DNA of 64,000 bases from the IMG/VR virus record IMGVR_UViG_3300007735_000804, positions 1 to 64,000 of that record; one strand, given 5' to 3'. The position numbers and the translations under genes are program-made. How positions within the stretch are numbered: the first letter of the stretch is position 1; the number at the start of each line of letters is the position of its first letter. A model generated the notes under the pieces. That model worked only from the letters and a program-made list of their open reading frames with translations, made no database searches and was not told the origin of the DNA. Positions 30,058 through 53,690 of this stretch are shown here, piece after piece.

Positions 30058-30293
30058 TATTCATCATCGTCTTTTACATAACAAGGAACTCGATCTGGAT
30101 CTAACCATTTCGCATACTCAATATCCTCCATTGCAGTAGAACATTGTAGAACATTATCAAAAAGATAAATGTCATTCCAGCGTTTTGTATAGTAATTTTG
30201 TTTTTGTAAACGATAATCGGGGTTACCGTTTATTTCAAGGATACCTGCTTCAACAAAACGATATCCTTCACGCTCCAGGAGAACCTTACTCAC
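30057..30293 (-). CDS. Hypothetical cyanophage protein
   Basis: 78 aa, coupled to the upstream gene. Confidence 0.65.
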   Translation of the reverse strand: MSKVLLEREGYRFVEAGILEINGNPDYRLQKQNYYTKRWNDIYLFDNVLQCSTAMEDIEYAKWLDPDRVPCYVKDDDE

Positions 30294-30577: not shown

Positions 30578-30651
30578 TCGGGCATAGAGGATTTGAACCT
30601 CTGGCCTTTCCGCCCCAAACGGAACGCGCTACCAAACTGCGCTAATGCCCG
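30578..30651 (-). tRNA. tRNA-Pro(UGG)
   Basis: Cloverleaf; TTCCG-TT TGG GG-CGGAA; GGTTCAAATCC. Confidence 0.93.
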
Positions 30652-30691
30652 TTGCGTTGAGTGGTCTTGCCTCCCAACAGAAGTAATTATA

Positions 30692-30844
30692 CTACTTCTT
30701 GTGCCCCCTGTCAAACGGAGCCCAGTGCTGCCATCCGTATTTATGAATTGCCCAGATACCCATAATAGGCAGAACAATCAAAAGATATCCAATAATACCA
30801 AGAGTATAAGGATTTTCTAATACCCATCTTGCAAAGTGTCCCAT
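30692..30844 (-). CDS. 50-aa single-TM protein (not in ORF track)
   Basis: MGHFARWVLENPYTLGIIGYLLIVLPIMGIWAIHKYGWQHWAPFDRGHKK; TAATG coupling. Confidence 0.65.
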   Translation of the reverse strand: MGHFARWVLENPYTLGIIGYLLIVLPIMGIWAIHKYGWQHWAPFDRGHKK

Positions 30845-31065
30845 TAATATCCCCTCCAAGTCTTAAATTCGTAGTAAAAATATTGGTCAAGAATTTTATC
30901 ATCTAATGGAGCATTCTCTTCCCTATGTGCCCACTCAACACAGAAATCTACAATCTTATGGTCGTGTAATGAACTATGTCCCCACATTCTTACGAATGCA
31001 GTTGCAGCAAAGTGATATCGTTGCCTAATGTGCGGTTCCGTTTCCCTTATAATCTTTGGAGTCAT
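30844..31065 (-). CDS. Hypothetical cyanophage protein
   Basis: 73 aa ending YFYYEFKTWRGY. Confidence 0.6.
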   Translation of the reverse strand: MTPKIIRETEPHIRQRYHFAATAFVRMWGHSSLHDHKIVDFCVEWAHREENAPLDDKILDQYFYYEFKTWRGY

Positions 31066-31147
31066 AGTATCCTCCTTTTGTTCCGAAATAGAGTGTTGTT
31101 AAAACAAACGGGACTGAAACAAATAAAAGTGCTTTTGCGAGTAACAT
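31025..31147 (-). CDS. ndhP: NDH-1L small subunit NdhP homologue, 40 aa (not in ORF track)
   Basis: MLLAKALLFVSVPFVLTTLYFGTKGGYYDSKDYKGNGTAH matches the NdhP TM plus FGTxNGFYDxDxYHGNGSAH signature. Confidence 0.85.
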   Translation of the reverse strand: MLLAKALLFVSVPFVLTTLYFGTKGGYYDSKDYKGNGTAH

Positions 31148-31314
31148 TATGAAAATACTCCTGGAACATAATCAATTCTTTCACGAAGTTCATCTAGAAG
31201 GACGCCATACTCCTTGAACCTTCTATCACCAGCAATGAAACATCTTTGTCTCATCCATACTGCATCTGCGATTAATTTTAGTTCGTAATCTGAAAAATCT
31301 TTAAAGCGTTCCAT
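31147..31314 (-). CDS. 55-aa micro-protein, paralogue of 7384..7545
   Basis: Core ADAVWMRQRCFIAGDRRFKEYG. Confidence 0.75.
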   Translation of the reverse strand: MERFKDFSDYELKLIADAVWMRQRCFIAGDRRFKEYGVLLDELRERIDYVPGVFS

Positions 31315-31321
31315 ATTTCTC

Positions 31322-31417
31322 CTAGTGGGGTGGATATGCATGATTGAGTCCCCATACAATGAAGCACCCTATCGCACCAAAAATAGTTAATGCCTTGAAC
31401 AATAGATTAGTATTCAT
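31322..31417 (-). CDS. 31-aa single-TM peptide resembling the NdhQ C-terminus
   Basis: MNTNLLFKALTIFGAIGCFIVWGLNHAYPPH versus recalled NdhQ ...ILGFIAGLIWWALHTAY. Confidence 0.45.
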   Translation of the reverse strand: MNTNLLFKALTIFGAIGCFIVWGLNHAYPPH

Positions 31418-31511
31418 TATCCTCATCCTCGTAAGTAGATGGTTCTTCTATCTTTTGCTGTAAAACTCTTTGTTGTAGTTCTTGAATATCTTCGTCCGTA
31501 ATAGATATCAT
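31407..31511 (-). CDS. 34-aa acidic micro-protein
   Basis: MISITDEDIQELQQRVLQQKIEEPSTYEDEDNEY; ATGA coupling. Confidence 0.5.
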   Translation of the reverse strand: MISITDEDIQELQQRVLQQKIEEPSTYEDEDNEY

Positions 31512-31687
31512 TTGTCCTTGAGTAGTTCTTCTATTCTTTGACGCATATTTATGCTGTCCTGTTTCATATAGTCCCGAAGAGAATATCCCTTCTGACCTCT
31601 CATAATACAGGTGCCTTGATAGAACATCGTGGCTGCAAATACTAACAGGAGAACGATACCAATTATTTCAGGGTAATGTTGAGCCAT
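31508..31687 (-). CDS. 59-aa single-TM protein
   Basis: MAQHYPEIIGIVLLLVFAATMFYQG...RIEELLKDK. Confidence 0.6.
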   Translation of the reverse strand: MAQHYPEIIGIVLLLVFAATMFYQGTCIMRGQKGYSLRDYMKQDSINMRQRIEELLKDK

Positions 31688-31869
31688 GGTAGTACTGGTG
31701 GAATAACTCCGATAAGTCTTAACAATCCTTCAGCAAATAGAGCAAGAACCACCCAACCAACACACATAGAAATAATGGAAGCATTCCGATTGTGTTGTCG
31801 TATAGCAGCATCAATCATCTCCTGGACTTCAGAACGAGATACATAATCGTCATCAAACGGTTCCATCAT
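31663..31869 (-). CDS. Small membrane protein
   Basis: HNRNASIISMCVGWVVLALFAEGLLRL. Confidence 0.65.
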   Translation of the reverse strand: MMEPFDDDYVSRSEVQEMIDAAIRQHNRNASIISMCVGWVVLALFAEGLLRLIGVIPPVLPWLNITLK

Positions 31870-32015
31870 TTCTCATCTCCAAGAAACTTTGCAAGAGGAT
31901 CCTTGCGAGTTTTAACTATTTCAACTGCTCTCTTGTAGAACATATTATCCATGTTCCCAGAGGCTTCAAAAGTCTCCTTGATCTTCACCCAGTTCTCATA
32001 GGTGTGCTGATCCAT
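31866..32015 (-). CDS. 49-aa hypothetical protein, first gene after an early promoter
   Basis: MDQHTYENWVKIKETFEASGNMDNMFYKRAVEIVK... Confidence 0.65.
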   Translation of the reverse strand: MDQHTYENWVKIKETFEASGNMDNMFYKRAVEIVKTRKDPLAKFLGDEK

Positions 32016-32131
32016 AGGTTTAAAGTTTGAATACTACTAGTTATGCTAGTGAGTAATTCTACTATGTCAAGTTTGTGTTGATATAAAAATATACATTAAG
32101 ACAATCTTAAAATTGTAATATTTTTTTTAAA

Positions 32132-32215
32132 CGGAAAGGGTGGGATTCGAACCCACGGTGCTATTAACACGACAGTTTTCAAGACTGTTTCCTTAAACCA
32201 CTCGGACACCTTTCC
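32132..32215 (-). tRNA. tRNA-Ser(UGA)
   Basis: ACAGT-CT TGA AA-ACTGT; long variable arm. Confidence 0.93.
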
Positions 32216-32222
32216 ATATAAA

Positions 32223-32294
32223 TGGGAAATGCTAGATTTGAACTAGCGACCTCTGCGTTATCAGCACATTGCTCTACCGCTGAGCTAATCTCCC
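32223..32294 (-). tRNA. tRNA-Ile(GAU)
   Basis: TGTG-CT GAT AA-CGCA; cloverleaf. Confidence 0.9.
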
Positions 32295-32297
32295 ATA

Positions 32298-32389
32298 CGG
32301 AGGATGTTGGATTTGAACCAACGGATGCACTTAAAGTACATCGGGGGATTAGCAATCCCCTGCATTAAACCTAACTCTGCCAATCCTCC
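32298..32389 (-). tRNA. tRNA-Ser(GCU)
   Basis: GGGGA-TT GCT AA-TCCCC; long variable arm. Confidence 0.92.
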
Positions 32390-32646
32390 TATCGGATTTC
32401 AAAGTCTAGGCGTTTTACTTTACGCTGACGCCTTGCTTCCTGAAAAGCAAGATCTTCGTTTGAAAGAACACCAGACTTTGATTTTGTATGATAGGAGTTT
32501 AGCATAACGACAGATGATAAGTCAACTGCAGAGATCTTATCACCACGAATAGTTGACATATTGGGACAACCACACGTCACAGTTTTAGTAGGATGCCCCT
32601 CTAACTCCTTACCACAGGAGCGGCATCTGATTCTTAAATTATCCAT
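32389..32646 (-). CDS. Cys-rich (Zn-binding) hypothetical protein
   Basis: CRSCG...CGCPN. Confidence 0.7.
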   Translation of the reverse strand: MDNLRIRCRSCGKELEGHPTKTVTCGCPNMSTIRGDKISAVDLSSVVMLNSYHTKSKSGVLSNEDLAFQEARRQRKVKRLDFEIR

Positions 32647-32652
32647 TTTATA

Positions 32653-33090
32653 CTATTTTTCAGTAAATGAACGCAACATCCAAATGTATTTTCCGTGTGC
32701 TTCGTTTAGATCATCAAGAAGATTAATCGTTCCTCTTGACTTTTGCTCTTCCGCTTCAACAGCAGCAGCATCAAACATAGCAACTATTTTTTTATGATCC
32801 TCAAGAAGATCACGAATCATTTCCATTGAAGAAATGTTAGTCTTTGCTTCAGAAACCCCAGAAACTTCCAATACTCGTGAAAGAGAACTGATAGGTTTAA
32901 TACCTAAGAATCTCATATGTTCTGATAATCTATCAATCTCTTCCTGAATAGTAAGATATTGCTCCCCAAACAAATCATGAATCTGTTTAAAGTCTTCCCC
33001 TACAACATGCCAATGATAAACCCAAGTTTTCTGAAAGAGTAAAAAGAGCGATGCTTGCGTATCACTCAGAAGTTTATATAGAGATTCCAT
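32653..33090 (-). CDS. dps: Dps / ferritin-like DNA-protection protein
   Basis: YHWHVVG, IHDLF, IDRLSE, KYIWML. Confidence 0.9.
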   Translation of the reverse strand: MESLYKLLSDTQASLFLLFQKTWVYHWHVVGEDFKQIHDLFGEQYLTIQEEIDRLSEHMRFLGIKPISSLSRVLEVSGVSEAKTNISSMEMIRDLLEDHKKIVAMFDAAAVEAEEQKSRGTINLLDDLNEAHGKYIWMLRSFTEK

Positions 33091-33120
33091 TATACTTCTT
33101 TTTGAAAGTATTTATAAAAG

Positions 33121-33193
33121 TGCCCGATATAGGTTCCGCCCCTACCGATGCCTGCTTGTAAGGCAGGTCCCTTCACTAGCTGGGTCATCGGGC
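33121..33193 (-). tRNA. tRNA-Val(UAC) with atypical T-loop
   Basis: CCTGC-CT TAC AA-GCAGG; acceptor stem GCCCGAT/ATCGGGC; T-loop GGCGGAA. Confidence 0.75.
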
Positions 33194-33533
33194 AAAAAAT
33201 TAAAGTTTTTCCATCATATATTCTACAGTATTTGCTACATCATTCATAGCGTTCCGTAAATTTTCTCTTTGACCCGACTCTTGCCTTACGACTGGGCGAT
33301 GGTCGTCTGTAAGAGTCCAACGCCATTGATTCATATCCTTACAAAACCAGAGATTAATTTTCATTCTTGAAATACTCTAGTTCGATCCATTTGAGAAGAG
33401 TATTGTATGAATAGATTGCTGCTTCATTGCAATTATTCTTTTTCATATCTTGAATATAAAATTCAAGAGCATCAATAACCATCTCACGATCTTTTTGGGA
33501 AATAAGAGACATAAACCTCCTAACTCGTTATCT

Positions 33534-33568
33534 ATAATACATTAAAAAGGGGGTCTTGTCAACCCCCC
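33534..33568 (-). promoter_or_regulatory. Early promoter within a terminator hairpin
   Basis: GGGGGT-TGACAAG-ACCCCC-TTTTT; TTGACA-17-TATTAT. Confidence 0.7.
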
Positions 33569-33591
33569 ATTCTATATTATGTAGTTAGGTA

Positions 33592-33963
33592 TCAGAAGGA
33601 ATAACGCACCTTCAGTTCACCGCCCATATCAAACACTTTGGACAGTCCACCATATTCACCAGTCACTTTGGCATTCACACCAACATTCTTGGAAACTTTG
33701 GATTTCACACCAACTTCACCAACGGTCACATACTCATTACGGGTAGAACCAGTATTCCACTCATAACCAGGACCGATCTCACCAAAAACAACAACGTTCT
33801 TGGCAACTTTATCTTCATAACCGATACGCAGTTCGGTTTGTGCGGACTTATAGTTGCCGTCAGAAAGAGCAGTAGTGGTCTTGCTTTCTACATAAGGGCC
33901 AGCAAATGCAGCCGAAGCAAGGAAAGGAGTTGCAGCAACAGCTGCGATTGCGGATTTAAACAT
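33592..33963 (-). CDS. Small outer-membrane beta-barrel protein
   Basis: Signal peptide MFKSAIAAVAA...AFA, alternating beta-strands, C-terminal RYSF. Confidence 0.75.
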   Translation of the reverse strand: MFKSAIAAVAATPFLASAAFAGPYVESKTTTALSDGNYKSAQTELRIGYEDKVAKNVVVFGEIGPGYEWNTGSTRNEYVTVGEVGVKSKVSKNVGVNAKVTGEYGGLSKVFDMGGELKVRYSF

Positions 33964-34105
33964 AATAGTACCTCTATATTTTCTCGCAGAGTTTCCTGCG
34001 GATGTAAGGAGTTTCGACAAACTCCCTTTAGTTCAGTGACTCAACAAGTATTTGAGGTTTCATCACTTGATTTATTTAGATATTAACGGGAATTCGGTTT
34101 CCCGA

Positions 34106-34177
34106 AGCGGAGTATCGGATTCGAACCGACGACGAACTGCTTGGAAGGCAGTCATTCTACCACTGAATTAACTCCGC
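34106..34177 (-). tRNA. tRNA-Gly(UCC)
   Basis: ACTGC-CT TCC AA-GCAGT. Confidence 0.93.
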
Positions 34178-34223
34178 AAAGTGGGGGATTTCTCCCCCAA
34201 CACACTTCCTTCACACAAAAGAA

Positions 34224-34252
34224 AGTATAAGACATAATATGAATTATGTCAA
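34224..34252 (-). promoter_or_regulatory. Sigma70 promoter with a palindromic spacer
   Basis: TTGACA-17-TATACT; GACATAAT-N4-ATTATGTC inverted repeat. Confidence 0.75.
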
Positions 34253-34253
34253 G

Positions 34254-34326
34254 AGCCCCCGCTCGGAATCGAACCGAGAATCTTCCGCTTACAAGGCGGA
34301 TGCAGTAACCGTTATGCTACAAGGGC
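34254..34326 (-). tRNA. tRNA-Thr(UGU)
   Basis: TCCGC-CT TGT AA-GCGGA. Confidence 0.93.
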
Positions 34327-34330
34327 AAAT

Positions 34331-34538
34331 GGGTAACGAGTGCCCGTCACCCGCAGAAGACACTTTCTGCAATTTTCACTGCATTAGAGGGCAGTGAATA
34401 AAAACATTTCCAGTAGCCGCTCTTATCTCCCATAAGGAAGATGTAGGCATCGAACCTACAAAGGACAGTCCCGAAGAACTGCTGGGAATTCCACCCAGAA
34501 TGTAGTTTAGAAGAATCAGACATTTCCAATCCCTCTAA
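34331..34538 (-). ncRNA. Unidentified highly structured RNA between tRNA-Asn and tRNA-Thr
   Basis: Seven hairpins plus a possible TTAGAGG/CCTCTAA pseudoknot. Confidence 0.6.
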
Positions 34539-34610
34539 CTCCCCAACCTCGATTCGAACGAGGGACAGCAAAATTAACAGTTTTGAGTTCTACCACTGAA
34601 CTATTGGGGA
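34539..34610 (-). tRNA. tRNA-Asn(GUU)
   Basis: CAAAA-CT GTT AA-TTTTG. Confidence 0.92.
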
Positions 34611-34635
34611 ATGGTTTGGAGCATTATACTCCAAG

Positions 34636-34708
34636 CAGGGCAGGAGGGATTTGAACCCCCATCTTACATCTTAGAAGGATGGTGCATGATCCGTCATGCT
34701 GCTGCCCC
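34636..34708 (-). tRNA. tRNA-Arg(UCU)
   Basis: CATC-CT TCT AA-GATG; GGTTCAAATCC. Confidence 0.9.
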
Positions 34709-35144: not shown

Positions 35145-35336
35145 TCACTCCTCTTCAGTAAATTCTGCAGTAGTTTTTTCTGTTGATTTTGGTTCTGGAA
35201 GGGTTACACCGATTTGAGTCAAATACTCAATTGCACCTTGGACTTTCCAAAACAATTCTCTATTTTGAGAAATTTGCTGATCTAAAGTAGATCTTTGTTG
35301 TAAAAGATTTTGAAGATGTTCTTGTTGTTCAGTCAT
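35145..35336 (-). CDS. Small coiled-coil protein
   Basis: Probable start MTEQQEHL. Confidence 0.55.
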   Translation of the reverse strand: MTEQQEHLQNLLQQRSTLDQQISQNRELFWKVQGAIEYLTQIGVTLPEPKSTEKTTAEFTEEE

Positions 35337-35395
35337 TGTTCTATAAAAAGTAAACAGTAAAAAGTAAGGGGGAGTCATTCCACTCCCCCTATATA

Positions 35396-36031
35396 TCAAA
35401 CTTCTACCATGATCAGTTTGGAAGCATACTCATGAGCATACGAAGTGCGGGCGCCATGATGCCCCCAACCAATCCAACTATACGCATAGTCCATATAACG
35501 GTTAATCGATTTACCAGGAGTCTTCATACGCTCCTCAATCTTTTGCCATTGGACCTCGTTTGTAAGATAACGAAGTTGCGTATCCAGAGATGATGGTGAC
35601 CCACCATTCCTTCTAGCAAAATCACCCAATCCATAATATCTGTTGGCAGATGTCCATTGAATCAGTCCGTAACCGCCGTAGCAATTACGCCAACTGGTTC
35701 TGCTACCACCTTCGCAAATGTTAGGAATAAAAGTTGATTCCTGACGAATATTACCCATGATGGTAGCAAGGGCGTTTCTGTCTTTAATACCACGATCCTG
35801 GAAGTATGCCAGGGTAGCATTCTCATGTTCATTACACCCTTTACAAATTAGCCTTTTCTCTTTTGGCTTTTCAGCGGGAGCAACCTCTTTGGTCGCTGTC
35901 GGTGTTTCAAACTCCTTAACGATTGCAAATGGCGGAGCATCTACAGGTGGAGGTGGAAACAGGGGCAGTGTTGCCGCATTGGTTGTAACCGTTGCCAGGA
36001 GAGGCAGGGCTACTGTAAAGAAATTTTGCAC
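35396..36031 (-). CDS. Secreted phage-tail-lysozyme-type cell-wall hydrolase
   Basis: IMGNIRQES, GYGLIQWT, QLRYL; probable GTG start and signal peptide. Confidence 0.8.
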   Translation of the reverse strand: MQNFFTVALPLLATVTTNAATLPLFPPPPVDAPPFAIVKEFETPTATKEVAPAEKPKEKRLICKGCNEHENATLAYFQDRGIKDRNALATIMGNIRQESTFIPNICEGGSRTSWRNCYGGYGLIQWTSANRYYGLGDFARRNGGSPSSLDTQLRYLTNEVQWQKIEERMKTPGKSINRYMDYAYSWIGWGHHGARTSYAHEYASKLIMVEV

Positions 36032-36243
36032 TAGTTTTAATTGAACTCTACATCCGTATAGAAAGGGGGTACACCCTCTTCTCAAAGGGCACTTTCCACG
36101 GCTCTAATTGTCACTCAAAGTCTCATTACGAGAAAACCCACCATAAGAATGGGTTTGTTCATAATAAGTTAATATTTATGATTTGTCAAGATGCCAGTTT
36201 AGAAAATGTCTTTCCTAAATAAGCTAGGTTCATATTTAAAAAA

Positions 36244-36705
36244 ATGAAAAGACTTCTATTAGCCTTTTCGTTATTCTTTACTACTCCTGCTTTTGCTGGT
36301 GAAATTACATCCAAAATCGTGGATTCAATACAATTAAGCGTTCAGGGTGCAGCGGTACAATCAGAGAGAGTCGGTGGACAATATGCCGTCTCTGGTACAA
36401 ATATCAACGTAACAACTCTTGGTGGAGTTGGTAGTGCAGGTTCTTATGCGATCAACACAAACGGACAAGCATTTAGTTTCTCCGAATCATCAATTACTGC
36501 AGATACTGTTGTCACCACTCAGTCGGCAGCTTCTGGAACAATTGCTTCTCCCAACCTTTACAGCAACTCTACTACTCAGTTAGGTGGAGACAAGGGTTCT
36601 CTTGCAGGTACACTTTCACCAACAAGTATTCCTACTATCACTGCAGGTGGTCCTGGAAGCACTGGTACTGCACAAAGAACCATCGAGTTAAGCGTATTCA
36701 AGTGA
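36244..36705 (+). CDS. Secreted beta-rich protein A
   Basis: Signal peptide ending PAFA; Ser/Thr/Gly-rich; ends LSVFK. Confidence 0.75.
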   Translation: MKRLLLAFSLFFTTPAFAGEITSKIVDSIQLSVQGAAVQSERVGGQYAVSGTNINVTTLGGVGSAGSYAINTNGQAFSFSESSITADTVVTTQSAASGTIASPNLYSNSTTQLGGDKGSLAGTLSPTSIPTITAGGPGSTGTAQRTIELSVFK

Positions 36706-37064
36706 GACACATAACTCCCGTTTTGCTGCTTGCAACGGGACTTATATCTCCCTGTTATGCAGCGCCTGTCACTCCTAATTTTACGAGTGGCACGATTACT
36801 TCTGAGACCAGAACTCGCACTGAGGTGGTTGAAGTTATCAAACAAATAGAATATACAACTGGAACATCTTATACTGTCACTGGTACTAATATTAATATAC
36901 CTGACCGTCCTGGTCCAGGCACGAACTACACAATTCAAACGCAAGGTGCTCCGTTCCAGTTTAGTGAGACTTATCTGACTCCTGGAATTGCGAAAGAAAC
37001 ATGGATAGATCGCAAAACAGTAGAGGAATCTACTACAAATTCATTGTCGGTCTTTACGCAATAG
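36702..37064 (+). CDS. Secreted beta-rich protein B, related to A
   Basis: Signal peptide; shared GTNIN and G.AF.FSE-like motifs; ends LSVFTQ. Confidence 0.75.
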   Translation: MRHITPVLLLATGLISPCYAAPVTPNFTSGTITSETRTRTEVVEVIKQIEYTTGTSYTVTGTNINIPDRPGPGTNYTIQTQGAPFQFSETYLTPGIAKETWIDRKTVEESTTNSLSVFTQ

Positions 37065-37597
37065 TATTTGCTCTACCAGCAACTGCTCAGCAAGCACCGT
37101 CTAATACGAATATTGCAGGACCCTCAGCATCTGCCACTGGTAATGTAACCAATCAGGCAGTTCAAGTGCTTCAGGGTCCTTTTGCTGTGAATACTTATGG
37201 TTCTGGTGTTTCATGTCAAGGTCCAACATTAAGTCTACAAACATTTGGATATAACAGTATTGCAGGTAGTAATGATCCAACATCTTATCAGACCAGTTCA
37301 TTCAATGGAGGACTCTCTGCAGGGTTCTCTATACCGCTTGACGGGTCATTTCAAGAACTATGTAAGACAAGAGTGAGAACTGAAATATCCAGACAGCAGG
37401 CAGAGGCAGACAAGGCACGACTTGATTTTGAATTGGTGCGTCTACTTAAATGTGGTGAGGCAATTAAGTCAGGTATTACATTTCATCCAGAAAGTCCCTA
37501 TGCAAAAATATGTGCTGATGTAGTTGTTAAGTATCCCAGAGTACAGGATGTAGTCAATGGAAATAAAAATAATCAGTCCATCGTCCGTAAGAATTGA
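37001..37597 (+). CDS. Secreted protein with Cys residues and a C-terminal helical region
   Basis: Signal peptide; ASATGNVTNQAVQ, CQGPT, RLDFELVRLLKCG. Confidence 0.7.
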   Translation: MDRSQNSRGIYYKFIVGLYAIVFALPATAQQAPSNTNIAGPSASATGNVTNQAVQVLQGPFAVNTYGSGVSCQGPTLSLQTFGYNSIAGSNDPTSYQTSSFNGGLSAGFSIPLDGSFQELCKTRVRTEISRQQAEADKARLDFELVRLLKCGEAIKSGITFHPESPYAKICADVVVKYPRVQDVVNGNKNNQSIVRKN

Positions 37598-38240
37598 AGA
37601 ACCACCAATCATTCCTACGATAGAACCTCCTGTTACAAGAAGAGCGGAACGAACTGTAACACGTGGATTAGAACTTCCAATTATCAATATTCCAGACCCA
37701 TCATTCAAATATCCAGTCATTGATGTTCCGACTCAAGAAGAGTTTGATGCTGCGGTAAGAGCAGAACAAAAGAAACAAGAAGAGGAAAAAGAAGAAAAAA
37801 CTAGAAGTCTTCCTGACTCAAAACCAATCGTTCCACAAGTTCAAGTTCCTCAAGAGTCAGTACAAGACAAAATTATCAAAGAAACCAATACAGAAAACAA
37901 CAATTTAGGAGTTCCTGTCATTGAAGTACCAATCATCGGGGAAGTTCCAGTCCCACCTAAAGAGCAGGTTATTCTTGCTGGCACCACTGCTACTGCTTCT
38001 GTTGCTGCGGCTCTTGTTGGCAAATCTTTGGTGGAATGGATGGTAAAGAAGATGAAACCAGTTGTTGAACAGATATTCGTAAGGGGTAAGAAACTCTTGA
38101 GTAGAGATCTTACCCCATATGAACTTCAGATCTACTTTGCGTTTGAGAAAAGTCAGTCTCTGAAGAAAGTTAATAAGTTACTTAAAAAAGAACAAAAGAA
38201 AGAAAAGAAAGAACAATACAAAAAGTTTCACGAGAAGTGA
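37557..38240 (+). CDS. Pro-rich membrane-associated protein with a basic C-terminus
   Basis: VILAGTTATASVAAALVG hydrophobic segment. Confidence 0.65.
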   Translation: MEIKIISPSSVRIEEPPIIPTIEPPVTRRAERTVTRGLELPIINIPDPSFKYPVIDVPTQEEFDAAVRAEQKKQEEEKEEKTRSLPDSKPIVPQVQVPQESVQDKIIKETNTENNNLGVPVIEVPIIGEVPVPPKEQVILAGTTATASVAAALVGKSLVEWMVKKMKPVVEQIFVRGKKLLSRDLTPYELQIYFAFEKSQSLKKVNKLLKKEQKKEKKEQYKKFHEK

Positions 38241-38654
38241 TTACTTCTTACGCTTTGCATCCAGTTCAGCAAAGTTCTTGACCTTGGTGCCGCCATCATA
38301 AGACCAAGCATATCCCTCAATAATCATTTGGTCGTTGAGAGATGTTGGTTCATCATTAATAAACAAGTGTCCGATGATCCTACCATACTTCTCCGTAGAA
38401 TCAGGAAGTTCTGTCTTGATTAGAATGTTTTTAGCATTTTCACAACGATGCTTCAACCATTCTTTTGATTCAAGTCCGTATTTTTTCTCATTCGCATCAG
38501 CGGTGCGGCTTTCAGGAGTATCAACCCCAGCAAGGCGAATGCGTTTAGTGAGAGATATGTCAAACCCCAAATCAATATCAGCGTCAATAGTGTCCCCATC
38601 GACTACTTTATGGATTGAGCGAATACGATATATGTATGGGTCTTTATTATCCAT
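38241..38654 (-). CDS. Thermonuclease (SNase-like)
   Basis: VVDGDTID, RIRLAGVDTPE, KYGRII. Confidence 0.9.
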   Translation of the reverse strand: MDNKDPYIYRIRSIHKVVDGDTIDADIDLGFDISLTKRIRLAGVDTPESRTADANEKKYGLESKEWLKHRCENAKNILIKTELPDSTEKYGRIIGHLFINDEPTSLNDQMIIEGYAWSYDGGTKVKNFAELDAKRKK

Positions 38655-38866
38655 TAGAAAGGAAACTTAATACTCGCAGTATTTAGTTTCGGAATAGATA
38701 ATTTTTCAAATGCTCTGTTGACTTGATTCTCTACAACCTTACCAACAAACTCTTCTGGGTTGTTTAGAATTGCTTCTGCTCTCTTATAAGTCACATAAGC
38801 ACCATAACAAAGTGCTCCACTAATGAGAAGGCTTGTCGTCGATAGAATGATTGCTAGGTTCTTCAT
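38654..38866 (-). CDS. Small membrane protein
   Basis: N-terminal TM helix. Confidence 0.6.
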   Translation of the reverse strand: MKNLAIILSTTSLLISGALCYGAYVTYKRAEAILNNPEEFVGKVVENQVNRAFEKLSIPKLNTASIKFPF

Positions 38867-38964
38867 TTTTCATTTCCTCATTTGCTAATCGTAATATGTA
38901 GAAGATCACATATGCAGTAAAAGCAAGTCCACACCCAAGTAAAGTCAACACTCCCCAGGGAAAA

Positions 38965-39165
38965 TCATTCATTCCAACCTCCTTCCTGTTTATGTATCCA
39001 AACTTTCAAATTTTTTACATATTTTCTTAATGTTTCTGCTTGAGAAAGATGCCAATCATCACCTGTCATAAGATGCTGCCGCATATGTTCATCGACAGCA
39101 TCCAGACATTTCTTAATTACAGGATTCCAGGGTTCCCTTATAGGATTGTTCCACTCTCGTGGCAT
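38965..39165 (-). CDS. Hypothetical cyanophage protein
   Basis: MPREWNNPIREPWN. Confidence 0.65.
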   Translation of the reverse strand: MPREWNNPIREPWNPVIKKCLDAVDEHMRQHLMTGDDWHLSQAETLRKYVKNLKVWIHKQEGGWNE

Positions 39166-39171
39166 AAAACC

Positions 39172-39285
39172 TCACTTTTTCTTTCCACCGTTTTTTGCTT
39201 TTTTAGCAGTCGCATTACCTTGATTCTGTTTAGAGTTTTTACTTCCAGTAGAACCTTTTTTACCTTTGTTTGCGGACTTTGCCAT
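39172..39285 (-). CDS. 37-aa Lys-rich basic peptide (not in ORF track)
   Basis: MAKSANKGKKGSTGSKNSKQNQGNATAKKAKNGGKKK; TGATG coupling. Confidence 0.6.
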   Translation of the reverse strand: MAKSANKGKKGSTGSKNSKQNQGNATAKKAKNGGKKK

Positions 39286-39617
39286 CAAACTCCACCTGTT
39301 CTTGGTTGAACTTGTCCTTCAAGAACTTCAACTCTTTCTTCAAGAGATACAGTTGCTTCAGGAGCAGGTGGTTCTGGTGGTGCTTCTACAACTTCTTCTC
39401 TGCGTGGCTCTTCTTTCTTCTCATCATCCTCACCACCTTTCTTCATCGTGTTAATACCAAATGTGGCAGCGGATGCTGTAAAGACTGTAGCAATAAAGGT
39501 AGGATCCATTTTGGATAGCATACCAGCATAGCTAGCAGTAAGAAGAGCAGCAGACCAACTCAAGATAGAAATACGAATAATCTGACTCATACATTTACCT
39601 TTCTTGTCGTTTTCCAT
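39285..39617 (-). CDS. Two-TM membrane protein, holin candidate
   Basis: Two hydrophobic helices and a charged C-tail; directly downstream of the lysozyme. Confidence 0.55.
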   Translation of the reverse strand: MENDKKGKCMSQIIRISILSWSAALLTASYAGMLSKMDPTFIATVFTASAATFGINTMKKGGEDDEKKEEPRREEVVEAPPEPPAPEATVSLEERVEVLEGQVQPRTGGV

Positions 39618-39635
39618 TTTAGTTTGTGTGTGAAG

Positions 39636-40298
39636 TTAACCTTTTTTCCAAGCTTCACCTTCTGCTTTTCTTCTACGTGCTAAACCTGCTTCTACATTTG
39701 AACCAGGATTTCTGTAAAGATAAAGCGCATCGGGCACCAGATCCCATTCTTTATTTTTTAGGCGTTTAGTAATAGTATTGAAGTTATCACCACCGTAGAA
39801 ACCAGCCCCAAGATTATAAGCAAAGCTAAGAAGAGCTCCTCTTTTTCCATCTGACATTTCATTCCAGTGTGGGATTTTACGAAGTGATGGAAGAAAATTA
39901 TGCTTACACTCTTCAATCAGAAGTTCATCTGCTTCTGCTTGTGTAATTGTATCTCCCATGTGGAATGGTTTACCATTTTTATCTCTTGTACATCCCCAAC
40001 CGATTGTGATTGGAAGTCCACCCGATAGAGGATCAGGATAGGCATTCAGTCTACATCCTTCAAACTCTTTGATAAGTTTGATACCCATCATTGGAACATC
40101 ACCACCTGTTACAGGAGCTGCAGCAGCGGGTGCCGGTGCAGCACTAGTCTTTTTTCCACGATAAATCTCTGCCCAATCTACATTATCCTCCAAAAACTTA
40201 ACTGGTAGGTTGTCTTCTAACCATTGAACTGCCTTCACATGGTTAGGGTTCTTCTCATCATAGAATTGAAAGAAGTTATGTAAATCAATTCTTGCCAT
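39636..40298 (-). CDS. GH24 lysozyme (endolysin)
   Basis: IKEFEGCRLNAYPD...TIGWG, SFAYNLG, GLARRRKAE. Confidence 0.92.
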   Translation of the reverse strand: MARIDLHNFFQFYDEKNPNHVKAVQWLEDNLPVKFLEDNVDWAEIYRGKKTSAAPAPAAAAPVTGGDVPMMGIKLIKEFEGCRLNAYPDPLSGGLPITIGWGCTRDKNGKPFHMGDTITQAEADELLIEECKHNFLPSLRKIPHWNEMSDGKRGALLSFAYNLGAGFYGGDNFNTITKRLKNKEWDLVPDALYLYRNPGSNVEAGLARRRKAEGEAWKKG

Positions 40299-40396
40299 TG
40301 TTGCCTCCGAAGTATTTTTGATAAAGTTGATTTGCTTCTAAGTGTTTACCATGATTTGTAAGATCCTTAATGATCTTAAGCATCTTTCTCTTAAAA

Positions 40397-41068
40397 TTAA
40401 TCGAAGATTCTTCCCCATCCATCATTACCTCCTGGGCACCAACGATACTTCAACATAGCCTTTGTATAAATGGTCTTCTTACCGTTGGTAACAGGACCAG
40501 TGTAGTTGTCATTACACGAACCATATGGGTCATTACAATAGTAACCTTTGCCATCTGGTGTTTTACCGATGACTACAACCATGTGCCCACCAGTAGGAGC
40601 AGAAAGAGGACCCCTGTGGAGGATACCAATAACGACAGGTTTCCCAGCGTCAAGACTTTTATCAATGTCAGCAAAAGAAAGATTGTAACTAAAGTGTGAC
40701 TTAACTCCATAACCTGCCAGAACCTTTGTCTGAACCGCATGGTCAGTCGTGTCACCAATCGCAAATACTTTCTTGACATACTCATCGTCGCCTTTGATGC
40801 TGCCTGGCTTGAGGAAAGCAAGGCACATAGCGCACGATGAACTGTTACAAGTTCTATGTGCATCTCTATAGTTATCTACTTGATTAAAGTATGGAACATC
40901 GAGTACTGCTGGTGTTGGTGGTTTTGTTCTGTAAATACCAATCCAGTCAGTCTCTGCGTCATCTAGGAATTGAGCAGGAAGGTTATCTTCTAACCATTGA
41001 ACTGCCGCTACATGATTTGAATTTTTTTCGTCGTAAAATTTAAAAAAATTGTGAAGGTCTAGTGTCAT
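40397..41068 (-). CDS. C39-like peptidase (probable endolysin)
   Basis: VPYFNQ, CNSSSCAM, GHMVVVIG, NDPYG. Confidence 0.85.
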   Translation of the reverse strand: MTLDLHNFFKFYDEKNSNHVAAVQWLEDNLPAQFLDDAETDWIGIYRTKPPTPAVLDVPYFNQVDNYRDAHRTCNSSSCAMCLAFLKPGSIKGDDEYVKKVFAIGDTTDHAVQTKVLAGYGVKSHFSYNLSFADIDKSLDAGKPVVIGILHRGPLSAPTGGHMVVVIGKTPDGKGYYCNDPYGSCNDNYTGPVTNGKKTIYTKAMLKYRWCPGGNDGWGRIFD

Positions 41069-41246
41069 CTCCCTCTCCTATGAACTCTAATGAGAAAATG
41101 TCATGATCAGGAATTTCTGGATTCAACCATTCACGAAATTCAGATTGAATCGCATGGGCATCTTCAATGTTCTTTTCACAGAGAGTATGAATACGGTCAA
41201 CTGCCCAATCATGTGTTTGGCGAAGAGTCTTTTCCAAAGTTTCCAT
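41040..41246 (-). CDS. Hypothetical cyanophage protein
   Basis: 68-aa ORF in a coupled run. Confidence 0.6.
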   Translation of the reverse strand: METLEKTLRQTHDWAVDRIHTLCEKNIEDAHAIQSEFREWLNPEIPDHDIFSLEFIGEGDDTRPSQFF

Positions 41247-41658
41247 AATCTTTTCGCATATAGCGTCCTAGAATATTGCTATTATAGTACGCAGGAGAAC
41301 CATCGTCAAGAGACTCGATCAACACATTATTTAGGAAAAGTTGTTTTGTTTCTTCATAGTTACACTGTCCTTTGGTTCGATGGAGGCTAAGTATTCTTCT
41401 GTCGCAGGATGCTTTTCCCCAAACGTCAATGTCTGCTTTAAGTTCTGGGCAGGAACCGTAATACTTTTTCCAATCAGACTCTGATTTAACTTTTCTACTT
41501 TTTCCTTTTGGTTTACGAAAACTCCACAGATACTTCCTCCCAATATATTTACGACCAGTTGGACGGCAATGTATAAGATATACAAAACCAAAATAATCTT
41601 GAATATGATCAGAATCAAATACTTCCCCATTGTAGATCCAGGGATTCTCATAGCTCAT
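41209..41658 (-). CDS. GIY-YIG-like endonuclease
   Basis: GFVYLI...RKYIGRK, YYGS. Confidence 0.75.
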   Translation of the reverse strand: MSYENPWIYNGEVFDSDHIQDYFGFVYLIHCRPTGRKYIGRKYLWSFRKPKGKSRKVKSESDWKKYYGSCPELKADIDVWGKASCDRRILSLHRTKGQCNYEETKQLFLNNVLIESLDDGSPAYYNSNILGRYMRKDYGNFGKDSSPNT

Positions 41659-53508: not shown

Positions 53509-53531
53509 AAGTATTTTATTTTTATTTAGAA

Positions 53532-53613
53532 TGCCCAAAAGAGGACTTGAACCTCCACAGATATTTCTACAGGAACCTAAACCCTGCGCGTCTACCAATT
53601 CCGCCATTTGGGC
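53532..53613 (-). tRNA. tRNA-Leu(UAG)
   Basis: CAGGG-TT TAG GT-TCCTG; variable arm. Confidence 0.92.
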
Positions 53614-53616
53614 AAG

Positions 53617-53690
53617 TGGAGAATATCGGACTCGAACCGATGACTTCATCCTTGCAAAGGATGCGCTACTACCAACTGAGCTAATTCCCC
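53617..53690 (-). tRNA. tRNA-Ala(UGC)
   Basis: CATCC-TT TGC AA-GGATG; G3:U70 pair. Confidence 0.92.

Follow-up and report, generated by a model that had tools for sequence, protein, structure and literature searches.

When cyanophages lyse Synechococcus and Prochlorococcus, they open a major route for the release of carbon and nutrients in oceans and lakes. In the model podovirus T7, the interval between the tail fibre and terminase genes holds gene 17.5, encoding the holin, and genes 18.5 and 18.7, encoding the spanins; we know of no holin or spanin that has been identified for cyanophages. As late as 2026, the question of how the T4-like cyanophage Syn9 lyses its host was still treated as open (PMC13371907). 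Here we examine the first 64 kb (hereafter the window) of IMGVR_UViG_3300007735_000804, a complete 213-kb virus record, in which four overlapping open reading frames (ORFs), A to D, fill positions 36244–38240 of the plus strand while nearly all other genes lie on the minus strand. Among named phages, its closest kin are DSL-LC02, DSL-LC03 and S-SRM01 (Kyanoviridae), which infect freshwater Synechococcus, and this makes the window phage a T4-like cyanomyovirus of fresh water. We find that A–D travel with a fifth gene, h4, as a module linked in both T4-like and T7-like cyanophages, and we propose, with a probability of roughly 0.45, that this is a late-expressed lysis module, in which h4 would be the holin and D together with A, B and C would form an envelope-spanning, outer-membrane-disrupting substitute for spanins.

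The four ORFs encode A (153 amino acids, aa; 36244–36705), B (120 aa; 36702–37064), C (198 aa; 37001–37597) and D (227 aa; 37557–38240). As a preliminary description of the sequence had noted, successive genes overlap, by 4 nucleotides (nt; GTGA) for A/B, 64 nt for B/C and 41 nt for C/D, and the stop codon of D abuts that of a convergent nuclease gene. All four have PHROG matches (A, 564; B, 650; C, 848 and 1755; D, 9426, the last one weak). The remaining plus-strand ORFs of at least 110 aa in the window (at 30185, 34611, 38335, 49569 and 50411) are antisense to minus-strand genes or to transfer RNAs (tRNAs), and none has a PHROG match; as first supposed, the window thus has no convincing plus-strand genes other than A–D.

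Gene order was compared across 240 related loci, retrieved from IMG/VR with the C proteins of the window phage, P-SSP7 and P-HM2, in which ORFs were classed by iterated hidden Markov models (HMMs). Throughout, the A–D cassette travels with h4 (39285–39617, minus strand), which encodes a 110-aa DUF6450 protein and which we count as the fifth member of the module. In T7-like podoviruses, which have a single DUF6322 copy, the order is D-h4-B-C, all on one strand (65 of 80 loci), between the tail fibre gene and TerS/TerL. In marine T4-like myoviruses, A-B-C occupies the minority strand and is convergent with h4-D (47 of 80). The majority arrangement in freshwater myoviruses, that of the window, keeps A-B-C-D together and has h4 on the other strand, some way downstream (36 of 80 loci); in a minority (9 of 80), D lies beside h4, both on the minus strand. 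These two freshwater arrangements differ by inversion of the block D-nuclease-h1-h2-h3 (37557–39285 in the window), seen against loci L034, L035, L047, L050, L053, L057, L060 and others, so that the four-gene plus-strand operon of the window is a derived arrangement. The inverted block might have been a site-specific switch, but no inverted repeats flank it in the window, and we treat the event as an evolutionary rearrangement. Besides D, the block holds a staphylococcal-type (SNase) nuclease gene (38241–38654; Pfam) and three small ORFs, h1–h3, which together span 38241–39165 on the minus strand and are described here as context, not as module members.

When phage records were searched with tblastn, C matched 456, h4 428 and A 325, all of them Synechococcus or Prochlorococcus cyanophages and including the non-T4 myovirus S-TIM5; some of the records that match A are annotated ‘OMP1 protein’. 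The module is present in more than 400 cyanophage records belonging to at least two unrelated virus families. The ‘lone four-gene operon’ of the preliminary description therefore gives way to a five-gene module, with h4 about 1 kb away and with D brought into the operon by inversion, and the co-occurrence across cyanophages that the same description had put forward as a check is borne out by the linkage of the gene set in T4-like and T7-like loci alike. Its constituent families are already catalogued without function in Pfam, PHROG and the T4 gene clusters (T4-GC) of Sullivan et al. (2010): DUF6322, DUF6450 and PHROGs 564, 650, 848, 1755 and 721 cover A/B, h4 and C (PHROG E-values of 1e-19 to 1e-51), and in the P-HM2 annotation the module genes are T4-GC 237, 236, 235, 234 and 43, all ‘hypothetical’. 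The literature that we searched, including Sullivan et al. (2010), held nothing on the module genes or on their linkage across virus families.

No host homologues were found, and matches in ‘cellular’ assemblies, with phage-like contig sizes or implausible taxa, are most likely phage contigs that ended up in bins of metagenome-assembled or single-amplified genomes. DUF6322 occurs in two of 201 genomes of the host order; the copy in one of these (G005) is on a 189-kb, phage-sized contig, and the context of the other (G183) was not inspected. Cyanophage contigs (L252, L247–L272; some of about 188–194 kb) were also binned under Nonlabens, Formosa, Euryarchaeota, Saccharibacteria and others, and their presence in such bins is contamination of public metagenome-assembled genomes and isolate assemblies.

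A and B are paralogues within Pfam family DUF6322. They match each other directly (BLASTP E = 1e-8), HMMs iterated from either one converge on the same 360 proteins, and a profile–profile comparison (hhalign 97.4%, E = 1e-11, 82 columns) aligns the signal peptide and a core of the form Y-x-V-S-G-T-N-I ... G-x-A-F-x-F-S-E, which settles in the affirmative the relationship suspected from their shared motifs. B passes the Pfam DUF6322 model (PF19847) at 49.8 bits against a gathering threshold of 30.6, and was recovered again in a whole-genome search. A has no direct Pfam match and joins the family through hhalign, HMM convergence and the ESM Atlas, where its nearest clusters are 100% DUF6322 and are named ‘OMP1 protein family’. 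The two differ at their ends. Following its signal peptide (aa 1–19), A has an amphipathic N-terminal beta-strand, and its Gly/Thr/Ser-rich C-terminal extension ends in ELSVFK; both the strand and the extension belong to A. B, the copy present in all lineages, has a signal peptide at aa 1–21; its N-terminus is marked by an invariant VxPxFTxG and its C-terminus by SxSVFTQ. The LSVF-x ending that A and B were said to share holds in the window and, for B, in all three lineages ([ST]S[LIV]S[VI]F[ST][QN], with minor variants in some marine myoviruses), but that of A (ELSVFK) is limited to freshwater phages, marine A proteins ending in FV[TS]E[LI]x[IV]x. Nor is the ending a canonical beta-signal of outer membrane proteins, as had been suggested, because its aromatic residue is not C-terminal. 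Residues 17–55 of A also matched 20 repeats of a 2135-aa MucBP-domain adhesin, P0154 (summed E = 1e-14), which we judged to be a weak similarity of beta-strand motifs amplified by the repeats.

The AF2 model of B, built from a 63-sequence alignment (pLDDT 79, pTM 0.34), pairs strands 29–52 and 95–119, and with them the conserved N- and C-termini, in a Thr/Ser-rich hairpin of a predicted 24–25 residues per strand with a small head. Foldseek and VIA-align returned essentially only long hairpins of oligomeric barrels and rings, as weak matches (E 0.009–0.1, Z at most 3.8): the collars of phages phi29 and Andhra, aerolysin, lysenin, the anthrax PA, iota and CDTb pores, FliF, SpoIIIAG and PilQ. Among AFDB clusters the top match is DUF4402 (E = 2e-4, TM-score 0.27), and a PDB sequence search with the B profile gave nothing meaningful. 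These leads could also be taken to mean that A and B polymerise by beta-strand exchange, pilin- or amyloid-like, into a fibre at the cell surface or in the periplasm, with C as nucleator or anchor. A major/minor pair of paralogues with signal peptides and Thr/Ser/Gly-rich sequences would suit such a fibre, as would the DUF4402 match, the F-ENA fibre subunits among the VIA matches of B, and the chaperone-usher pilins among the ESM feature look-alikes of A (0.74–0.77). All of these structural and feature leads, however, fall below the tools' own reliability limits; a PF00577 search of the genome found no usher, and Pfam no curlin repeats; podoviruses have a single DUF6322 copy; and a fibre leaves unexplained why A and B are linked to h4, D and the endolysin gene. 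We regard a fibre as very unlikely.

C has a hydrophobic signal-peptide core at aa 14–29, followed by an invariant motif, ASATGNVTNQAVQ (aa 43–55; 37127–37165), that is disordered in the model, and by four invariant cysteines (72, 121, 151 and 171). The model of C (74 sequences; pLDDT 63, pTM 0.35) contains four short strands and a 42-residue helix at aa 115–156, and the strand at aa 104–115 is strongly amphipathic; the beta region and cysteines ascribed to C in the preliminary description are thus both there. Three weak leads, none of them significant, pointed to a TolC-like fold, which we have not adopted: Pfam OEP at 12.9 bits (E = 0.099), below its 22-bit cut-off; Foldseek matches to TolC, OprM and SilC in the PDB at E 4–7; and matches in the Atlas with TM-scores of 0.31–0.34. 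In VIA-align, only the helix was matched. A PDB sequence search with the C profile gave nothing meaningful.

Taken with the hairpin of B, whose matches are essentially all to barrel-forming hairpins, with the amphipathic strands of A and C and with a separate phage outer-membrane-protein gene nearby, the recurrent TolC/OEP leads raise the question of whether A and B, with or without C, are an outer-membrane channel or secretion conduit, i.e. a porin-like auxiliary or export route that has no part in lysis. We think this quite unlikely. The OEP score is well short of its cut-off, the fold matches have E-values above 3 and TM-scores of about 0.3, and a nutrient channel expressed late would have little time to serve. 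Much of the B hairpin is polar on both faces, which is not what a lipid-exposed barrel would show. Integral outer-membrane beta-barrels have at least eight amphipathic transmembrane strands and a C-terminal aromatic residue, whereas mature A and B comprise about 100–135 aa with about four predicted strands and end in ...VFK and ...VFTQ. All that speaks specifically for the two-component outer-membrane pore or the filament of the preliminary description is low-confidence models and non-significant fold matches.

The N-terminal domain of D is rich in Pro and carries a conserved PxIxxP...VIDVPTQEEF motif; a variable Pro/Glu linker leads on to an Ala/Thr-rich transmembrane helix (aa 138–163 of 227; 37968–38045), after which come a conserved cationic amphipathic helix at aa 163–180 (K-P-[IV]-[IV]-K) and a Lys-rich tail, so that the linker, hydrophobic helix and basic tail reported at the outset can all be located. 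The amphipathic helix has a muH of 0.5–0.6, against 0.25 when shuffled, and a net charge of +3 to +5. Net charge over the protein runs from -1.5 to -2.2 before the transmembrane helix to +1 to +6 after it, a distribution that, by the positive-inside rule, predicts an N-out, C-in topology for this bitopic protein. Marine D proteins have four cysteines in the N-domain; these and the four cysteines of C fit a location in the oxidising periplasm.

Export signals are conserved across the lineages. In each lineage, 95% or more of the homologues of A and of B pass a crude signal-peptide test for an n-region, h-region and AxA site. That of C is of the cleavable type, with an AxA site, and in 80–94% of motif-bearing C homologues, whatever the lineage, the invariant motif is closely preceded by a hydrophobic core (KD at least 2.0). 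D homologues pass the test in none of 75 freshwater and none of 75 marine myovirus sequences and in two of 64 from podoviruses. Three of the four proteins, A, B and C, accordingly have signal peptides, the number counted in the preliminary description. This bears on whether A–D are ordinary virion components or assembly factors, a suggestion that late-type expression and the position of the podovirus copies beside tail-fibre genes might encourage. The conserved Sec signals would take A, B and C out of the cytoplasm, where virions assemble, and the same set is found in myoviruses and podoviruses despite their different tails. That one set of exported and membrane proteins is shared by unrelated virions with common hosts points to the host envelope and not to the particle. 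In Syn5, gp55–58 resemble D, h4, B and C in size and position, and gp58 is a known capsid protein; no HMM match links them to the module, and they therefore do not show it to be structural. Our results support A–D being exported or membrane proteins linked to lysis genes, and we see next to no prospect of their being virion parts.

The sequence CTAAATA precedes A, as first reported, at 36215–36221 on the plus strand, 22 nt upstream of the gene. This heptamer is a described late-promoter variant of the T4-like phage Aeh1 (PMC1524935). It is not over-represented in the window (nine copies, against 15 expected), and all nine copies are in the sense orientation relative to local genes. Among relatives, it occurs within 120 nt upstream of A in 29 of 55 freshwater and 31 of 64 marine loci; in related myoviruses it stands upstream of A and of h4, and never of B, C or D. 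Having no late-promoter motif of its own, D invariably follows either C or h4 as a downstream gene. From the motif and the position of the genes, we think that the module is most likely expressed late.

This timing also bears on whether the module remodels the envelope for a purpose other than lysis, such as superinfection exclusion, or the masking or destruction of receptors, which would spare progeny from being wasted on debris and on cells already infected. The proteins are exported or membrane-bound, phage-only, host-lineage-specific and common to phage families with the same hosts, and A is annotated ‘OMP1’ in some records, all of which would suit such a role. Exclusion genes, however, are typically expressed early, as are imm and sp of T4, in contrast to the late-promoter motif and class-III position seen here, and five genes with inner-membrane components and coupling to an endolysin exceed what known receptor-masking systems need. 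We consider exclusion or masking unlikely.

As a check on expression, contigs from four RNA-library runs from fresh and other waters (one run probably DNA) were placed on 35300–40300. Summed contig depth is very high over the Phage_lysozyme2-type hydrolase gene beside A, intermediate over the lysozyme gene and h4, lower over A and B, and near background over C and D; one metatranscriptome contig covers the end of A and all of B. Such uneven depth suggests RNA rather than contaminating DNA, in data that, being unstranded, can neither reliably rank the genes nor prove transcription.

The link to lysis is drawn most directly by h4, which passes the Pfam DUF6450 model (PF20048) at 61.2 bits (E = 8e-17; gathering threshold 25 bits). 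It has two transmembrane helices (aa 13–34 and 40–58) and a C-terminal tail highly charged with acidic and basic residues, and it starts 18 nt past the stop of a lysozyme gene (39636–40298, minus strand; Pfam Phage_lysozyme), a candidate endolysin with no signal peptide that lies immediately upstream. Next to the latter is a gene for a C39-like cysteine peptidase (40397–41068, minus strand; Pfam), which matches an endolysin PHROG. Since neither the lysozyme nor the peptidase has an export signal, a holin is required. Small size, at least one transmembrane helix, a charged C-terminus and a place beside an endolysin gene are features expected of a holin, and h4 has them all; by these features h4, which matches no known holin family, is a holin candidate. 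Over the wider set, 26 of 66 freshwater loci contain a lysozyme or C39 peptidase, and 12 podovirus loci have a lysozyme 1–3 kb downstream of C. With the Phage_lysozyme2-type hydrolase and the SNase nuclease, Pfam matches thus give the three peptidoglycan hydrolases, the nuclease and the holin candidate with which the preliminary description had flanked A–D.

The lysozyme and the C39-like peptidase share an N-terminal domain of about 55 aa (65% identity, E = 1e-21). PHROG 3617 spans both enzymes and PHROG 10051 (‘endolysin’) comprises the peptidase with the N-domain, the profiles being 405–455 positions long; a two-enzyme endolysin has apparently been split here, or fused in other phages. Directly upstream of these genes is one for a SegE-type GIY-YIG homing endonuclease (41209–41658, minus strand). 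Between h3 and h4 there is a short candidate ORF (39170–39283, minus strand; under 40 aa) that starts MAKSANKGKKGS, whose ATG overlaps the stop of h4 (TGATG) and which is unannotated in relatives.

Spanins of the familiar kinds were not found. A lipobox scan of the whole 213-kb genome, from all possible starts, yielded no credible candidate, in agreement with the earlier impression that no lipoprotein spanin is evident, and the Rz family (PF03245) was found in none of five cyanophage genomes, four of them complete, at E up to 0.1. One ORF apart from an antisense artefact did pass the lipobox filter (G000:C1:69068–69331, minus strand; 87 aa, ...LISVPMLSC...); the sequence after its cysteine is hydrophobic, which makes it doubtful as an outer-membrane spanin.

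We therefore return to the lysis module proposed above. Transcribed late, it would perform the membrane steps in the lysis of picocyanobacterial hosts. The h4 protein would act as holin for the signal-less lysozyme and the peptidase encoded just upstream. The C-proximal helix of D would hold the protein in the inner membrane, leaving its cationic helix and tail on the cytoplasmic side and its Pro-rich N-domain reaching into the periplasm. A/B and C would be exported via Sec and would assemble at or in the outer membrane, possibly by way of long beta-hairpins and a disulfide-stabilised coiled coil. After degradation of the wall, an envelope-spanning complex of D with A/B/C would breach the outer membrane, the job done by spanins in other phages. 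Late timing, the holin role, the N-out topology of D, oligomerisation, any contacts among A, B, C and D and the part played in lysis are all inferred. The ‘envelope machine’ or spanin substitute of the preliminary description stands to the extent that the proteins are exported or membrane-bound, linked to lysis genes and encoded in a genome without a canonical spanin; that interpretation is supported in part, and is still the best reading.

Several observations weigh against this proposal. None of the five proteins falls into a known family of holins, spanins or disruptins. Marine myoviruses have no endolysin near the module, and a PF00959 lysozyme was found in none of the marine genomes searched (P-SSP7, G002 and G003). 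D lacks a signal peptide, yet its N-domain of 60–180 aa would need to be exported. The structure models have pTM values of 0.34–0.35, with fold matches that are non-significant or confined to a hairpin or helix, and along their outer halves the B strands show polar residues on either face. C and D give a weak metatranscriptome signal, in contigs that are unstranded and derive from relatives.

More speculatively still, A/B and C might form a hetero-oligomeric beta-barrel and coiled coil in the outer membrane, tethered to the inner membrane by the Pro-rich arm of D and triggered by the DUF6450 protein as holin. This would be a third class of breaching system beside spanins and disruptins, specific to picocyanobacteria and carried on a cassette exchanged among T4-, T7- and S-TIM5-like cyanophages; we rate this elaboration as rather improbable. 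The analysis defines five candidate lysis genes, carried by nearly all T4-like cyanophages and by many T7-like ones, and yields predictions of topology and phenotype that can be approached by the knock-out methods now available for cyanophages. A spanin substitute free of lipoproteins, if real, would add to the known ways in which phages breach Gram-negative envelopes, and could account for the way in which lysis is suited to the envelope of cyanobacteria.

Some neighbouring genes deserve mention. The Phage_lysozyme2-type hydrolase gene (35396–36085, minus strand; Pfam), divergent from A, has a near-consensus sigma-70-like promoter at 36189–36161 on the minus strand (11 of 12 positions matching), and no other gene of the region comes near it in depth of coverage by the metatranscriptome contigs. 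Its N-terminal hydrophobic segment may be an export or signal-arrest-release signal, and these features suggest an exported wall hydrolase under a host-type promoter. Further off, a Phage_OMP beta-barrel-like protein (33592–34020, minus strand; Pfam E = 1e-25) ends in ...VRYSF and is preceded by CTAAATA about 50 nt upstream; in 22 loci of marine myoviruses, a member of its family is found close to the module. The window has ten tRNA genes, which all lie on the minus strand in two clusters (30578–34708 and 53531–53690), and a ferritin/Dps-like gene (32653–33090) sits between tRNA groups.

How, then, does the module compare with described systems? The beta-pore-forming toxin stems and the phage collar and ring proteins (aerolysin, lysenin, anthrax PA, phi29 gp11, SpoIIIAG, FliF) resemble B in its predicted hairpin: with aerolysin-type toxins the match covers the hairpin only (Foldseek E 0.016–0.3, TM-score at most 0.25, VIA Z at most 3.8, from a model of pTM 0.34), and B, at about 100 aa when mature, has neither receptor or cap domains nor a clear lipid-facing surface. 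Class II holins such as S21 of phage 21, with two transmembrane helices and an N-in/C-in topology, share with h4 the small size, the two helices, the charged C-terminus and, for h4, a position directly downstream of a signal-less endolysin gene, although h4, as a DUF6450 protein, belongs to no holin family.

Spanins offer the fullest comparison. Like T1 gp11, a unimolecular spanin, D combines a C-terminal transmembrane anchor with what would be an extended, non-helical periplasmic segment; unlike gp11, it has neither lipobox nor signal peptide, so that attachment to the outer membrane would need A/B/C. With the two-component spanins (lambda Rz/Rz1, T7 gp18.5/18.7, T4 PseT.3/PseT.2) the module differs in that its exported partners carry no lipoprotein signal, A, B and C all lacking the lipobox cysteine that defines an outer-membrane spanin. 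The transmembrane helix of D is C-proximal where theirs is N-terminal, and its ectodomain is Pro-rich instead of coiled-coil; neither D nor C has the N-terminal anchor plus periplasmic coiled coil of an inner-membrane spanin. The module has three or four proteins in place of two, and nothing in it matches Rz in sequence. What the two have in common is late, overlapping genes linked to a holin and an endolysin, one partner anchored in the inner membrane with others exported toward the outer one, periplasmic cysteines with a long helix, and, in T7-like phages, an equivalent position in the genome. Thus, while the module departs from spanins in every structural feature by which they are recognised, a spanin system is what it most resembles.

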